A stretch of DNA of 59,623 bases, from the NCBI RefSeq assembly GCF_026571515.1, contig NW_026862901.1:1-59623 (forward strand). Reading direction: 5' to 3'. The DNA is from Ruditapes philippinarum. Lineage: Eukaryota. Within the stretch, counting starts at the first letter, position 1, and each line of letters starts with the position of its first letter. Below are positions 33,177-59,623 of this stretch, in pieces. The notes beneath the pieces are model-generated. The model was not told the DNA's origin. It did no database searches and saw only the letters and a program-made list of their open reading frames with translations. The position numbers and the translations under genes are program-made.

Positions 33177-33439
33177 TTGTTTGTTTGATTTGGTTTTACG
33201 GCGTTTCCAACATATTTTGAGTCATATGGCGCGAAAACAGGAAAGATGATTTTGATAAACATTGGGTGTTACAAATGAAATCAACACCAGTTGTTAAAAC
33301 CATCGCAGCTGCTGGAGCCAAGAGGTGCATAGACGCCAGTTATTCGAACCAATTAAGTCGCCTGTCTCGATCACGCAAGGATAAACGGTTCCTTAAATTC
33401 TGCCTCAATTCATATAGGCAACCCCTCAGCCACGAGGGG
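33177..33439 (-). mobile_element. SINE-like retroelement, 263 bp (family shared with 12603-13169)
   Basis: Perfect 12-bp TSD TCTTCAAATGAT (33165-33176, 33440-33451), (AAAC)n tail, 5' end CCCCTCGTGGCTGAGGGG. Confidence 0.9.
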
Positions 33440-52462: not shown

Positions 52463-54300
52463 GTTTTGATGTTTATTAACCTGGGCTGTAAATGCCGTTT
52501 GCAATGTGTAAATAACTTTCTTTGTTTCCTTAACAATACTTTACTTTTAAATACATTTAAAAAATGTAAATGAAAATAAGCATAAACCTGAAGGCATGCT
52601 GCTTTTGATATCAGGTAAAGAAGTAGCAGTCCGAAATCACAATATAATACTTTTTTAAACATTAAAGTTTATGCAATGCTTCAGAGAACAACAGTCAAAA
52701 CTGTTATTTCAAATTCTGTCATCGCCATTTTTATGATTGAGAAAAATTGAAAATATTAACAAAACAAGTTTTTTTTCCAAACTATATTATTTATACGTGC
52801 TGATGACTTTAAGTGAATGTTTTACTCAGCTTTATGTTATTTGTTCACATTTGCTTGCATAGATATGTGGCCTTTTGTTATTTCGTTTTACAAAAAAGTA
52901 GAAACACCGTTTTCTCCCGAAGATCCATTACAAGATATCTGCAAACATAAATGTTGTAAATGGATTCTCACGAGATTTATGGATTAGATATATTCTTGAA
53001 TGACTTTAAACAAAATTTTATAATGTTGTGGGATATTTCGTTTTTTGTTGTTGTTGTTTTTTTTTGTTGTTATTGTTGTTTTGTTTTTGTTTTTATTTGT
53101 TTGTTTTTTGGGGGGTTTTTTGTTGTTTTTTTCTTTTCAGAAACTGAAGTTATTGTGTTCTAGAAGTTGTTTTATTATTAAAAATCATTTTTAAGATATT
53201 AAATTAACAAACTATTGACTATAGAAAGAATAGATATGTTTCAAATTAATGTTCCTTGAAGGGAATATTTTCCCAAACCGTAGAATTAACTAATGAGTCA
53301 CTGTTCACGTTTTTTAATTAGTTACTCTATTGTTTTTTCTAACTCAGCAATTTTGTTTGGTGTTCACGTTAGTTAGAAGGTTTCCGAATATCCTGGTCAG
53401 ATACATTATATTGAAGGAACAAATTAATTAGACCTGTGGATTTGTTTTATAAGGATTCTGAATAAAATTCTCATACTCATATCAGATATAATGAACAGTT
53501 GTGGAAACGATATAACATTACAACTTCTTATAGTGATATCCGACCAACAGCGAATTTGACAAGAATGTGTACATATTTTATAACATTAAAAGTACATTCT
53601 CAAAACAAAGAAATGTGTTAATTGTAGTTTCTTTCCATTGGTCTATTGTATATAAATCTTAACTCTCAATTCAAAAATATAATGAAAACATTTCAAAATG
53701 ATGTTATGCACATCGCTTGTTTTTTCTTTTGCGAATGAATCAATTTATTAATTGTATTTAAACAAATTGTCTTTCTTAAGAAACTCGAACCTATACATGA
53801 CGATTATTTTACAATACTTCATACATTTTTTATAATTTTAAGAAAACTAAAATAGTTTATAAATTATATAGTAATTGGTAGTTTTGAAATTCTGGAAAGG
53901 AGATAAATCTCAAGAGAATGAAATAAAACAATTAGATTTAAAGCACAGACTCGGTTTTATTGAGTTTGATGGAAAGTGTAATATCTCTACCAAGCCCACT
54001 ACCTCCGGTTCAAGGATAAATTGAAGTATTTGAACCAATGATTTCAAATGACCAAAAATAAAACAACAGAAGTATAAAAAGACTAATAATATTTGTAAGA
54101 TCAATAACATTTTTTTTAAATTACAGTAAGATGAATCATGAAAGTTTCACTTTACTTGAACGAGATAAATGGCCCTGATACCAGCCACTCTTTACATACC
54201 AGCCACTTTATACCTTACATGTTACGAAAGAGTGAAATAAAAACTCCATTACCTGCCGAAAACTCCCATTTGCGTGTATTTCTATACCCTTTAATAGTAG

Positions 54301-54780
54301 TTTGTTTTGTTTTTTTTCGAATAAAATTTGGCTGTTCAAAGCGCCGTGCACCGTAGCTCGCCTTTACCACTACCATTGATAAACTATCAATAACATTGAG
54401 TCTGCAACATTTTTGATTTTGCCGTGTTGGGTTGAACGACCTTTCATATTCCAAGTTTATCATTTTCATTATCACGAAACGTGGTGGTCGTGTAGGCAGT
54501 ATTCACTCCGGATCACTAGTAAGCCACATTGAATTTACCAGAGCACAGTACAGCCCCCCGCATCGTTCCTGAGCAGGCTGTCAAGCAGTTTACCAGTACT
54601 AGTTCCCAACATTTCCGCGAGTAACTGGAACTTCTGTACATGCCAAAGCAGAAGTACAGTGCCAATAACCGTAGTAAAGGTTTCTAATCAATCGTAGCGA
54701 AAGTGATCTGCACCGTCAGGGAATAGAGCCCGGGTCGCCCGATTCACAGTCCAACGCTCTAGCTATTGAGCTAAATGGAC
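54301..54780 (-). mobile_element. tRNA-derived SINE (His-like anticodon region), diverged
   Basis: Minus-strand head TAGCTCAATAGCTAGAGCGTTGGACTGTGAATCGGGCGACCCGGGCTCTATTCCC and an A-rich tail at ~54301-54317. No clear TSD. Confidence 0.65.
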
Positions 54781-56337
54781 TTCTTTCTACGTAACGTATC
54801 ATAATTATTCCTTTATTTTGGCATTAAAATGTCTTTAAAATCTTGTTACACTAATCTGATATTTTTGGAAATTAATTGAATTAAAAACTAACAACAAAGA
54901 CAACTATGACAAGCTTCAAGTTAATATTTTCTTGTGACATTTCAAAAAACATATAAAACTATTAACCCATAATTGCTTTCTTTAATGAATATATTTTCTA
55001 TATTTGCAAAACGGAGATATAATTTCCAAATAAAAATCACTGTGCAACAAATTCAAAATTTGTTTTGCAAAACAATAAATTACCAATTTTAAGCAATTAT
55101 ATTTCCGTATTAACATTTGCATATTGTGTTACAAAATTGTTGTGGCAATTTGTAATGGTAAGATGCTCAACTTAATAATTTTTTTTTTTAATTGAAAAAG
55201 TGATGTAAAATATTGGCACTTGAGTTTGAATTATTTATAATATGATATAATCTACTGCTTTACTCTATTTTGAAATTATTTAAAAAATGTGTATTGTTAT
55301 CTTAGCGATTTAGTTTTCTAGGATTGAAATTTAACAATTATTGGATATTTGTTTCCATGCTACAACTTTGTCATTTACTAGGTAAAAAAACGTAAAATGA
55401 GTCAGACTAGTAATCATTTTATTTGGATTTTTGAAATGAAAAATATACTGCTATTATTTTATATAAAACTTTTAAAAAATACCTTTGATTAATTCTAATC
55501 ACCTTACAGCATTTCTATATGTCATTGTCATGCAGAAAAAACATAAAGTAGATATTTTACATATCGTAAGTGATCTAGACACCCACAATACTTACACTAT
55601 GAATAACGTTACAAACACATAAGTCTCATTTTGGGAAATTAGGTTTCTGCAAAACTTTCACGTTTGACTTGATATGATGACGATTTATGTTATGGTAATG
55701 CACATAAACGTGAATAAGTGCCCTGTTTATAAATAAAGGTTGATAACACGTGGCGTTCTTTGTACAATATGATATCAGATTATGTAAACTGATATTTGAA
55801 AATAGCGGACATTATACACTTGTTTTTTTTACTGTTTACAGAACTGAGCCAAAGTAATGTTACTATAGTCCGTGTTAAAGACCCTGTATGTTGTGATTGA
55901 TATTGTTACTGTGTGTATACCACACTTGCAAAAAATTATATATGTACATAATTATGCAAATAAAACATCGAAGAATATGTAAAATGTGTACTGCAAACAG
56001 TTGTGCACATTATATTTAATCAATAAATTGTATGCATTCATTTCTTATTGGAAAATTTTGACTTAGAATTTATAGAAAATAAATTTCTAATTACCTCCCT
56101 TTATTTACATGAAATGTTAAATTCGGTAATATCTTTATAAATAATGCTTATTGGAACTTACAATATTGACAAATCTTAATTTGAGCATCATATTTATGAA
56201 ATAAAACCATGAACAAAATGTGTTACAGGATCGTATATAAATAATTTGCCTATATTTGTCTTTTCGTTTTGCTGTTGTGGCCATATGTCGTTTACACATT
56301 ACTGTACTTAAAGAGGATATAGTGCTTTATCTCATCG

Positions 56338-56446
56338 ATTCCGACTTCCCTTTGCGGCGTGCACGTCGCTCGGAAGGCATAGGTCACACCAGATGGGTGA
56401 CCTAGTTAGGTCACTTAGCTGGTGTGACCTAACCAACGGCGAGGGG
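56338..56446 (+). ncRNA. HDV-like self-cleaving ribozyme (predicted)
   Basis: P1 ATTCCGA/TCGGAAG; P2 CCCTTTGCG/CGGCGAGGGG; P3 GCG/CGC; L3 TGCACGT; P1.1 GC/GC; long P4 56380-56431; J4/2 ACCAA. All elements are in canonical nested double-pseudoknot order. Confidence 0.8.
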
Positions 56447-56719
56447 TGTGGCCCTAAAGAGAGCTGCTGCTCCCGGAAGAGGTGCCTTTCCTCTATTGTC
56501 AACCATTGTTCAAGAAGCGAGGAATTGGGTCCTAGAGAAGGTCTACGATGAACGACAGCATGAAAAGACCTCCGTCGCGGCTCTACGACATCGACGACGT
56601 TGCAGGCGAATAAGTCCTCCGTTGCAGGCTCTACGACCAGCAATCGTAATAGAGCCCGACTAGTCTGGGACATATGGGAAACCGGCGCCCAGTATAAATA
56701 AAACCTAAAACAACAAAAA
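56338..56719 (+). mobile_element. Short non-autonomous non-LTR retroelement (382 bp) headed by an HDV-like ribozyme
   Basis: Perfect 11-bp TSD TTATCTCATCG (56327-56337, 56720-56730), A-rich tail, GC-rich body, no tRNA A/B boxes and no RT remnant. Confidence 0.9.
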
Positions 56720-57504
56720 TTATCTCATCGTTTGGTGTCTTTTTGACATTATTGCACTTTAACATGATATACAGTTTTATCTTATCTCTTGTCAGTACGC
56801 CATTTTTCTCTCTCTTTTTTTGCGTAATCTTAGTACAGTCTGCTATATGATATATTGTAATAGATTTGTTAGATAACCTTATATCGACTCCTGTAGTAAA
56901 AGCTATACATTATGCATGACCATTTACAATACGAATGATTTATAACTTTACGCTAAAAGAATCGTACATCATGGTCCGTGTAAATACGATGTTTCCCTAA
57001 TATAACTATTTATAGCTAACCATAAAAATTCTACTGTAAACTATCCTCTGGAAGCTTATGTATATATGATTACGTTAACTTTCTATCTAAAATGATCTCA
57101 ATACTGAGCAGCAAATTGTTGGCATACCTGCACTTAGAAATGTAAGATCAAGTGGCTTTAAATGAAACCACCATTTCTTCAACTGTTGATGTTATTTACT
57201 GTACTCGATACATTTCTAATAATAAGGCTTATATAGAAGGGTTTTACGTTTATATTATAACAAAGTCAAATTAAGTAAAAAGTCGGATATTGTTTTGTCA
57301 GTGGTTTATTTGCATCAGAGTAATTAGTATCGATGCTATATTTTTAAGTACACGAGTCATGTATAAAACAGATGTCTAAGTTTTCCTTATCATCATTTAA
57401 CTTTTTAAATCAACAATTTTTATAAAATAATTGTTGATGTGGTATACATATTCGACTGAAATAAGCATTCATTGACAAGAATTATAATTGCTCTCACGTA
57501 CGTT

Positions 57505-57805
57505 TGGGTCGATAACTTTTGGGTAACATTACGTAACTTATCAATTGCAACTAGTCTACTAATATGACAGACAAACAACCAAACTATCTGTTTTTATTAT
57601 GTTTTGAATAAGTGCTTTTCTCAATACTTGATGTATGCATATTTTCTCAAATTAGGAGGAGGCAGACTGATGCTAGAATAATTCAATTTGTGTCTCTACG
57701 GATGTTTTCAAATGATGAATAATTCAGTACAATCTGCTTAATATAGGAGCTAGAGTTATGGAATCTGTAGGATGCATCAATCAAATGAAAGCAGCTGGTG
57801 ATATC
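57505..57805 (+). repeat. Diverged direct repeat of 51675-51965
   Basis: Same shared blocks as the partner, ~5.8 kb apart. Confidence 0.85.
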
Positions 57806-59025
57806 TTAAGCCAGTACAAGCAATCTTTGTCTCATCTTAGTCATATTTCAGTATTATGTCTTGATACAGATCAATAGTCATACAACACGCCTTTGTCTGA
57901 CATTTTAAATCTATGTTCAAAATTTGAAAATGGACTCAATGTGATCGAGATAAAGTTACTTTAAAGTAAGCTATTGTATGGTATCTGATGAATAATTAAT
58001 TAATTATTCAATTTTGGTCGTAAGTTAACAAGAAAAAAGTATTTTTGAAATATGTTTATAGTGCCAGGCTAGGTGGCAATAGCCTGAAATCATAAGACAC
58101 AGATTTGAGTCTCCAGTAAATCTAAGAAGCAATAGTTTGAACTCATAAGCTACTGTTTTGGGTCTTCAGTAAAGATAATCCTACAAAATCTGTTACAGAA
58201 TCAGTTATACGAGTATGTATTCCCATTTGATTTTACTTTTTCATTTAATATCTTCTATTTTAGGATTCTCGATGAAGCATGAGGAATTTTCTTAACGATT
58301 AAACTGCAACTTGTCTGACGCTTTAATGAATTTCTTGTCTACGTGTCTTTTTCATAATGACTTGTATAGAATTGTTGCCTCTTCAATAAATGAGTATCTG
58401 GAAAATGGTGATCTCTTGGAAGCGTCAAAATCTGCAAAATTACATGAAAATTGCAGACTTGTACACATAGGAACATCCATCGTTCTTTTCAAAGATCTAT
58501 TTGAAGATGTCTGCAATCACAAATATTACAATTGACTTCTCAAGAGCATTATGGATCAGATACAGTCTTGGACGAATTTAAACAAACTGCCAGTTTTCAA
58601 TCACACTTAACTTTCATCTTTGATAGTTTGTCTTACATGTAAAACACAGAAATTGTTTTTTGGATTTTATTTTGACCTATAACGTAACTTAAAAAATTAA
58701 TTTAAAGTCACGTTATATAAATGCGTAAAGAAAACATTGTTTGTAAAATAGTTTTGATTTTAATTAATTTTCATTGAAATGAAATATTGTATATGTTGTA
58801 AAAACATAATGCTTCACTGTTACCGTGTTTTAATTAATCACTCAAAGTCGACAATTTTCTACAGCTATAAATAGCTGTAAGCTGTATAAACAATTAAGAA
58901 TTTGATTTTTGAAATCTTCGTTTACATTAATTAAAGATTGCATTTAGAATGAGAAATTTATAAATCAGAAATTTACTTTTAAACGATCTAAATTAAAATA
59001 ATTTAGCCAAGCCTTAAATAAATAT

Positions 59026-59176
59026 TGTTACGCTACGGTCCAGCTATATGGTACCAGGCCCCTTTAATCCTCTTAAAAATGTGGTAACGTGCTCAAGACT
59101 TGGTGACCAATAATCGTACTGGACTGTAGAGAACGATATTGTATTTACGAACAATGAAACGATCACAAATATAACA
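59026..59176. mobile_element. Possible small TG...CA element (solo LTR or short TIR element)
   Basis: TGTTAC...ATAACA ends, flanks ATAT/ATGT, internal inverted pair CTACGGTCCAG/CTGGACTGTAG. Confidence 0.3.
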
Positions 59177-59623
59177 ATGTTCTATATAAAATAGAAATTG
59201 TTAGGGTTAGAGGGACTGATGATACTAGTTTCGAATGACTGTCAAAGTCTATAGATCCATTTAGCTGAAATATGCTATAATGACGTCTGCCAATAGTGGT
59301 CTACTCTGTATAACTCTGTATGGCTAGGACACTGTACTCCACAGTACTTGATAATACTTCCTTACTTCTGGAGGTATGCCAGTTTAAGATAAAAATTGAG
59401 TCACAAAAAAGAAAGACTGTTCACAGTTTACTAATTTTAATTAGTGGTAAACTGTTAATAAATTAAATTGTCAAATATTCAAATAACAGTATTGTAAATA
59501 ACATCAACTCATGTATATAATTCAGTCTTAATAAATATCCGATAGCTATGTCTTACATAGACTTCACATAAATTATTACCGCGACTGCCGTTTAATTTCT
59601 ATTCAAAAATATGACAACGTAAA

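Follow-up and report, generated by a model that had tools for sequence, protein, structure and literature searches.

[quoted passage not shown] Integration of these elements is not random: their 5' ends lie in sense orientation behind a TATA box, at a distance of about 33 bp from its first T, and their first base coincides with the predicted cleavage site of a ribozyme of the HDV-like type. The reading that joins these features, in which a retroposed family carrying a 5' HDV-like ribozyme and a 3' module for a reverse transcriptase is inserted under the guidance of TATA boxes and may thus capture a promoter at each new site, is one that we consider probable, if some way from certain.

Results

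The window has a GC content of 31%, and at positions 56338-56719 a reading of its sequence had placed a 382-bp retroposed insert that has a perfect target-site duplication (TSD) of 11 bp on both sides and ends in an A-rich tail (AAAACAACAAAAA). These boundaries are borne out (Table 1), and base 56338, the 5' end of the element, is also the predicted first base after cleavage. The same sequence-only reading had described the element as lacking a tRNA, 5S or 7SL head, which agrees with our searches: ARAGORN found no tRNA in positions 54000-59623, and a permissive scan with Rfam models (E up to 10) gave no match inside the element. These results, together with runs of four to five T in the sense strand of family B (a sister family described below), which fit transcription by Pol II and argue against Pol III, rule out a Pol III SINE with a head of this kind.

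Table 1. Features of the window copy and its immediate flanks, in window positions
Feature	Position	Strand	Remarks
Weak TATA-like motif, TACTTAAA	56305..56312	+	6/8 vs TATAWAWR; 33 bp upstream of element base 1
Left TSD copy, 11 bp, ttatctcatcg	56327..56337	+	
P1 5' strand, ATTCCGA (consensus CTTCCGA)	56338..56344	+	Compensatory changes vs families B and C
P2 5' strand (56348-56355) and G56356	56348..56356	+	G56356 able to pair with C56437
P3 (GCG/CGC) around L3 (UGCACGU)	56357..56369	+	Invariant in families A, B and C
P1 3' strand TCGGAAG (56370-56376), P1.1 partner GC (56377-56378), A56379	56370..56379	+	P1.1 formed by L3 bases 2-3 (56361-56362) with 56377-56378
P4, long extended hairpin	56380..56431	+	13 bp plus 10 bp; other sequence in B and C, hairpin still closed
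J4/2, A-CCAA	56432..56436	+	Candidate catalytic cytosine C56433; motif C-N-A-A in A, B and C
C56437, bulged G56438, P2 3' strand (56439-56446)	56437..56446	+	
Family-specific body	56447..56664	+	No conserved ORF; no detectable similarity to the family B body
3' stem-loop common to A and B	56665..56692	+	Outer stem CUGGG/CCCAG here
TATAAATAAA, including AATAAA (56697-56702)	56693..56702	+	Poly(A)-signal-like
A-rich tail	56707..56719	+	(CAA)n, (CA)n or A runs in other copies
Right TSD copy	56720..56730	+	

A DNA search of the clam's own genome (1.4 Gb) yielded 267 candidates, 40 of which were scored as full-length copies, and a 22-nt pattern of the ribozyme core, with at most one mismatch allowed, had 118 genomic matches (0 for the reversed control). 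A covariance model built from family A scored at least 150 copies genome-wide; across the whole genome only family A was present among 150 scored matches, and no relatives surfaced. We retrieved 90 loci; at each there is a unit of about 380 bp whose identity to the window copy is 82-99%, and almost all family A copies are full length. Removal of duplicated insertions left 79 independent copies, on which the counts below are based (one duplicated pair, L023/L029, remains among them, and the true number is 78). Base 1 is the same C in 76 of these 79 copies, and the TSDs, readable in 54, adjoin it, with a length of 10-16 bp in 51 copies and of 8-18 bp overall. The copies end in short runs of A, (CAA)n or (CA)n, and no conserved open reading frame was found inside the element. 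Family A thus has the properties of a non-autonomous element mobilized by target-primed reverse transcription, that is, a TSD of variable length, an A-rich or microsatellite tail, dispersed copies and no coding capacity, so that the earlier suggestion of a SINE-like non-autonomous family has been upheld, as has the expectation that full-length copies should start at the predicted cleavage site; family A copies do not reach further 5'. The flanks consist of unrelated single-copy or repeat DNA and not of rDNA, which rules out an R2-derived SIDE.

Each of the HDV-like helices that had been proposed for the window copy is present in it (Table 1), and all five helices (P1, P1.1, P2, P3 and P4) form in the family A consensus, in the canonical nested double-pseudoknot order. 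With the element numbered such that window position equals 56337 + n, P1 (CTTCCGA/TCGGAAG) pairs positions 1-7 with 33-39 through seven Watson-Crick pairs, a number reached because consensus base 1 is C and not A; J1/2 spans 8-10; P2 joins 11-18 to 102-109 through eight contiguous pairs (position 16 being C), and G19 can pair with C100 across the bulged G101; P3 joins 20-22 to 30-32 (three pairs) and encloses L3 (23-29, UGCACGU), from which P1.1 pairs 24-25 with 40-41 (two pairs); P4 occupies 43-94, and J4/2 consists of A95 followed by C96, C97, A98 and A99. The sequence-only reading had cautioned that the window copy may be impaired, and this possible impairment is confined to that copy: its A at +1 and its T at position 16 are each C in 76 of the 79 copies. 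The consensus thus opens P1 with C-G and the window copy with A.G, neither of which is the G.U wobble that forms the +1 pair in the HDV and CPEB3 ribozymes.

Several lines of comparative evidence bear on this fold. In a 23-sequence alignment, 96.6% of the cells are paired, as opposed to 26-45% after a shift of the 3' partners by 1-3 columns, and within family A the P2 pair 18/102 is C-G in 28 copies, U-A in 45 and discordant in 6. We note that the G-to-A side of this pair lies outside CpG. A plain minimum free energy fold of the first 113 nt is far more stable than those of shuffled sequences (z = -5.8), mostly due to the long P4 hairpin. L3 begins with U, contributes its positions 2-3 to P1.1 and has CG at positions 5-6, and J4/2 takes the form C-N-A-A (CCAA in family A, CUAA in families B and C); we take L3 of family A to match that of the genomic HDV ribozyme position by position, and J4/2 to share its C-N-A-A form as well. 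An HDV-like descriptor matches 53 of the 79 family A copies, at base 1, and it had no match in random sequence, of which 1.6 Mb at 31% GC and a further 1.6 Mb at 57% GC were scanned, nor, families A, B and C apart, in 436 kb of genuine flanking DNA; the absence of matches in 3.2 Mb of random sequence rules out a fold by chance. Of the two database checks that had been suggested, the descriptor search therefore supports the assignment and the search with Rfam covariance models does not, the HDV-type models having had no match at E up to 10 to the window copy or to consensus-like copies of families A and B. Rfam models of the HDV type are lineage-specific.

Family A is part of a superfamily in which one predicted ribozyme core occurs in about 800 copies. 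A pattern consisting of this core with any P1 3' strand and GCA had 792 genomic matches (the reversed-pattern control had 0), in all of which L3 is UGCACGU; among the 100 matches listed, about 60% are of family B (P1 3' strand GGAGAAG), 19% of family C (TGAGAAG) and 13% of family A. Family B, whose members are about 470 bp long, was discovered with the HDV-like descriptor directly after the family A copy at two loci (L032 and L072) and recurs at a third (L088). We note that in most family B copies the repeat extends upstream of the ribozyme. Families A and B were compared through scripted parsing of the helix pairs, as MAFFT misaligned their 5' ends. Family B retains G-GCG-UGCACGU-CGC followed by GC-A, as well as A-CUAA-C, without change, and around these constant parts its helices differ in sequence: P1 is CTTCTCC/GGAGAAG, with three compensatory pairs relative to family A, P2 (CCCTCCAGAG/CTCTGGAGGG) also differs by compensatory changes, and P4 is an unrelated hairpin closed by 13 bp.

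In family C, P1 pairs CTTCTCA with TGAGAAG, again compensatory relative to family A. A pattern containing both P1 strands had 561 matches, in which CTTCTCC goes with GGAGAAG and CTTCTCA with TGAGAAG, with a handful of exceptions among the 100 listed. The P2 3' strand of family C, sought as a contiguous complement, had 0 matches; a relaxed pattern, which left most family C copies uncaptured, had only 8, of the form A-CUAA-U-G-CCGAGGGG, in which CCGAGGGG complements the family C P2 5' strand and follows a bulged G as in family A. Covariation, which had been named as a check on the fold, is therefore present in P1, P2 and P4, both within family A and between the sister families, and absent from P1.1, which is invariant. 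P3, L3 and P1.1, being constant in all three families, speak neither for nor against the fold. Taken with the descriptor results, the compensatory changes indicate that the HDV-like fold is real and under selection, and comparative evidence supports its assignment as a ribozyme well, with self-cleavage predicted and catalysis inferred. A separate scan of metagenomes for the ribozyme core gave three GC-rich bacterial matches, which we judge to be due to chance and irrelevant.

Similarity between families A and B is confined to two blocks: the ribozyme core and a 3'-terminal stretch of about 60 nt with 82% identity. The 3' block has the same order in both families, a stem-loop followed by a conserved AATAAA and then the tail, and the outer stem of the stem-loop is CUGGG/CCCAG in family A as against CUCGG/CCGAG in family B, a difference of one compensatory pair. 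The AATAAA, which in the window copy lies 5 nt ahead of the start of the tail, is kept in both families, and the adjoining TATA part of the motif is found in family A only. The 3' stem-loop is likely to be the recognition site for the reverse transcriptase of a partner LINE, and the 3' end as a whole is laid out as would be expected for an RNA that is recognized by one specific enzyme of this kind and carries a Pol II poly(A) signal. Among the genomic matches we found no LINE with either end of family A: a 22-mer from the 3' end had 112 matches, no more than there are short elements, compared with 118 for the 5' core, and the extra matches are diverged full copies.

We find that the upstream flanks of family A copies do not belong to one repeat family and nonetheless share a TATA motif. 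A forward match to TATAWAWR (at least 7 of 8 positions) starts between -38 and -28 of base 1 in 51 of the 79 copies, against counts of 4-10 in three control ranges; the background, measured on 3,160 flank windows, is 0.124 per equivalent stretch, which gives a binomial P of 3e-27, and we regard the association as statistically secure. The first T of the motif has its mode at -33 and a spread of -29 to -38 (SD 2.5), and information content across the flanks from -80 to -1 is flat save at -34 to -25. The motifs are of the TATAAA or TATATAA type and lie, at a fixed distance, outside the 10-16-bp TSD. At the position equivalent to that of the weak motif of the window copy, most other copies have a good TATA box. 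When the flanks are aligned instead on the left edge of the TSD, the site of the first, bottom-strand nick, the TATA motif occupies -22 to -14, the nick falls about 14-15 bp past the TATA box, and the nick site itself has only a weak preference for G or T followed by A.

Family B has the same arrangement. TATAAA occurs 28-38 bp upstream of its base 1 in 298 matches, as against 1 match at 58-68 bp, and among the listed family B matches with unrelated leaders the TATA distance peaks at -32 to -34. At L032, L072 and L088 a family A copy lies at, or within the first 2-15 nt of, a family B copy and the pair is preceded by a single TATA box, which implies that the same site was used by two insertions.

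Discussion

Where a metazoan Pol II promoter has a TATA box, the start site follows it by about 30-31 bp. Because the spacing of about 33 bp that we observe corresponds to the Pol II distance from TATA box to start, we infer that a new copy of the element would be transcribed from the TATA box of its host site. In the mechanism that we propose, the 5' HDV-like ribozyme would cut off the upstream transcript, such that the RNA that is copied starts at base 1 of the element, and the reverse transcriptase of a partner LINE would take the 3' stem-loop, AAUAAA and tail as its substrate for target-primed reverse transcription. A new copy, placed at the Pol II TATA-to-start distance, would then be transcribed from the host TATA box with a start a few nucleotides upstream of the ribozyme, which would trim this short leader, and the cycle would repeat. 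The sequence-only reading had supposed that the elements are released from read-through transcripts, and this part of it needs to be revised: with copies lying some 33 bp behind a TATA box, transcription would not depend on chance, and the promoter would come with the site.

It is conceivable, and we offer this more tentatively than the mechanism itself, that the promoterless superfamily integrates at Pol II core promoters as such, with bound TBP or the pre-initiation complex, and not any sequence at the nick, serving to read the TATA box. Counted from the first T of that box, the two nicks would then fall at about 22 and 34 bp, on either side of the DNA that melts at initiation, every copy would begin at a transcription start site, and the HDV-like ribozyme would have only a few host nucleotides to remove. 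If true, such complex-guided reading of TATA would be the Pol II counterpart of the targeting of Pol III genes by Ty3 and TRE5-A. Alternatively, the TATA motif might be no promoter but the recognition sequence of the endonuclease or DNA-binding domain of the partner element, comparable to the site preference of R2 and further LINEs with specific targets, with transcription by read-through and the ribozyme acting as we describe. The nick is nearly free of signal and the sole determinant lies about 14-22 bp upstream of it, as a separate DNA-binding domain would give, and the orientation bias is moderate (TATAAA 20 versus TTTATA 7 in family A copies). A check for host genes by way of downstream open reading frames at the insertion sites found few, none of them convincing; the small number of sites with an obvious downstream gene may mean that the targeted TATA boxes are in many cases cryptic and not working promoters. 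Against recognition alone, however, the 5' end falls at the TATA-to-start distance (mode -33), in sense, in family A, in dispersed copies of family B and in the class of family B copies with a conserved leader described below, and a promoterless element with a leader-trimming ribozyme and AAUAAA would gain precisely from such placement. We therefore think it unlikely that TATA serves as a recognition sequence and nothing more.

A short non-coding element with an HDV-like ribozyme at its 5' end and a recognition module at its 3' end, as we propose for family A, is a design already known from NARTc/L1Tc and the R2 SIDEs. In L1Tc and NARTc of Trypanosoma cruzi an HDV-like ribozyme (Pr77/L1TcRz) lies at the start of the element and its cleavage defines +1 (PMC3185411, PMC3383444); the ribozyme of L1Tc, which is experimentally active, has C at +1, and the non-autonomous NARTc carries the same ribozyme as its LINE (PMC3185411). 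A first pair of G.U is thus not universal, since an active ribozyme begins with C (PMC3185411), and family A resembles L1Tc/NARTc both in its C at +1 and in having its predicted ribozyme on the first bases of a short non-autonomous element. In L1Tc, however, the same 77 nt are also an internal promoter, whereas family A has no evident promoter of this kind, and it is the target DNA that supplies a promoter-like TATA box; P1.1 has 2 bp in family A and 1 bp in L1TcRz, and the two elements come from different phyla and have no sequence similarity. In R2 and its SIDEs a 5' HDV-like ribozyme frees the element from a co-transcript made from the host promoter, the SIDEs keeping only the 5' ribozyme and the 3' end that binds the reverse transcriptase (PMC3414825). 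As in R2, whose transcription is thereby driven by a host promoter, insertion of family A is targeted. R2 and the SIDEs use one site in 28S rDNA and are co-transcribed by Pol I, while family A occupies unrelated sites that share only a TATA box, and unlike R2 and the SIDEs it has a TSD of about 12 bp and signals of the Pol II type (TATA and AAUAAA).

The closest analogies for the targeting itself are Ty3 of yeast and TRE5-A of Dictyostelium, which integrate at a fixed distance from a transcription-factor site at Pol III complexes (PMC5911963, PMC6101501). Family A is like these elements in that a fixed distance, and not the sequence at the nick, sets the site, a pattern that resembles guidance by a complex containing TBP; Ty3 and TRE5-A target Pol III genes and have promoters of their own, whereas family A lies at Pol II spacing from TATA and seems to rely on it. 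Family A also shares with the metazoan retrozymes, short non-coding retroelements with a self-cleaving hammerhead ribozyme that have been reported in mussels (PMC7229834), the character of a short non-coding invertebrate retroelement with a (predicted) self-cleaving ribozyme; the retrozymes differ in having hammerheads, tandem repeats and circular RNAs, where family A has single dispersed copies, TSDs and one 5' ribozyme of the HDV-like type.

In the literature that we searched we found no earlier report of a ribozyme-headed element of the HDV-like type in molluscs, and none of a non-LTR element that targets TATA boxes. The ribozyme-headed retroelements known so far rely on an internal promoter, a single rDNA site or fortuitous read-through. 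Insertion at a set spacing from TATA would explain how a promoterless, non-coding element continues to be transcribed after each jump. If confirmed, it would represent a new mode of targeting for target-primed reverse transcription and a natural means of delivering cargo to promoter start sites, and the superfamily would provide a compact and active-looking family of predicted HDV-like ribozymes with natural covariation data.

The family B copies include a class that might point to a different unit of amplification. About 70% of the listed family B copies with TATAAA have one conserved 34-nt leader, TATAAAT(A/G)GCG...GTTGAAA, fused to base 1, and a 26-nt stretch of this leader (two variants) has 298 exact genomic copies, which among the 100 listed are nearly always followed by the start of family B. 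The junction between leader and family B is too uniform for independent insertions, which implies that a larger unit of promoter plus element has been amplified. One could therefore suppose that a larger unit with its own TATA, perhaps LTR-like or retrozyme-like, is the primary element and that the dispersed copies of 380-470 bp are by-products, arising when released RNAs are passively retroposed, and two contigs do have pairs of family B copies in the same orientation, spaced by 3.1 and 3.5 kb; however, passive retroposition leaves unexplained why TATA lies at -33 in the unrelated flanks of family A and of dispersed family B copies, and the upstream flanks of family A contain no leader class, and we consider it highly doubtful that this account holds for the superfamily.

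It seems to us similarly improbable that Pol II, initiating some 31-33 bp past the TATA box, fixes the 5' end of the elements, with the pseudoknot serving protein binding or RNA stability instead of cleavage. The TATA distance alone would predict a start near base 1, the Rfam models gave no match, and RNA-seq has no sign of cleavage: in four runs, whose libraries look unstranded, no pile-up of read starts was reported at 56338. The TATA distance, however, varies from -29 to -38, and yet base 1 is constant, where initiation would be expected to give ragged ends. Moreover, the hallmarks of HDV ribozymes are kept across the families, namely a 7-bp P1 that starts at base 1, the U and CG of L3, a 2-bp P1.1 and the C-N-A-A of J4/2, and the descriptor that captures this fold is without false positives in the random sequence. 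We thus retain a predicted ribozyme as what would define the 5' end. In the same four runs, read depth is about 100 per orientation within the window element compared with 0-2 in its flanks; because at least 150 copies are present in the genome, this depth is about that of the flank background multiplied by copy number. We also observe that the variant frequencies in the RNA-seq reads mirror the genomic mix of copies.

Related families and promoter spacing

The most abundant of the families that share the predicted ribozyme core is family B, which accounts for ~60% of the 792 core copies, a share taken from the places listed. We find that B is a sister element of family A, the ~380-bp non-autonomous retroelement present in the window; it is ~470 bp long and has the same ribozyme core and the same 3' module (a stem-loop, AATAAA and the tail) as A, its P1, P2 and P4 differ from those of A, and its body is unrelated to the A body. 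Family C, to which ~19% of the core copies belong (likewise from the places listed), has CTTCTCA/TGAGAAG as its P1 and shares with A a CUU at J1/2; its P4 differs and its J4/2 reads CUAA.

On many contigs of the window's own genome, a single conserved 34-nt leader that bears a TATA box stands ahead of most B copies and is fused to base 1, the predicted cleavage site. A 26-nt stretch of this leader, in two of its variants, occurs in 298 exact copies in the genome, and among 100 places listed it is nearly always followed by the start of B; after two of the listed leaders there is an A/CA-rich run in place of the B start. Family A carries a TATAAATA of its own 27 nt before its 3' end (window 56693-56700). 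Where A precedes B, this terminal TATAAATA box sits 34 bp upstream of B base 1 (locus L032:1534-1562), and an inserted A copy thus sets up the promoter spacing anew for whichever element follows.

Possible other routes of spread

On two contigs a B ribozyme is paired with another in the same orientation, at distances of 3.1 and 3.5 kb, and these pairs might be direct-repeat units, LTR-like or retrozyme-like, or else local duplications. One and the same A insertion is found on three contigs within a ~1-kb repeat, indicating that other repeats, when they multiply, can also carry A copies along as passengers. At locus L018, 47 nt of flank and the first 238 nt of A have been duplicated locally, and three A copies in the same orientation at a spacing of ~7.4 kb (contig C14110:128606-143526) probably represent a tandem segmental repeat.

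Features of families A, B and C and of the window (C-numbers, contigs of the window's own genome, G000; L-numbers, fetched loci)
Feature	Location	Strand	Remark
Family B element	L032:1562-2040	+	directly after A copy
Family B element	L072 and L088	-	directly after A copy
B leader	C242:54958-55005		example
B leader	C684:4885-4932		example
B ribozyme pair	C1777:5911-9095		same orientation
B ribozyme pair	C1385:267670-271240		same orientation
Family C	C122:180051-180092		example
Family C	C335:74348-74389		example
Repeat around A insertion	L034, L044, L056		~380 bp upstream to ~265 bp downstream of A copy
Weak tRNA-like Rfam match	window 54709-54780	-	24.5 bits, below gathering score of 29

Other features of the window

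The core common to the three families is absent from window 33346-33391. ARAGORN called no tRNA at the minus-strand tRNA-like match, which may be the degraded head of a tRNA-derived SINE. Just upstream of the window's A copy lies an interspersed repeat (56138-56245) whose RNA-seq depth is very high (~2,000-2,700 per orientation, two runs), and copies related to it occur in the flanks of four fetched loci (L041, L062, L064 and L078).
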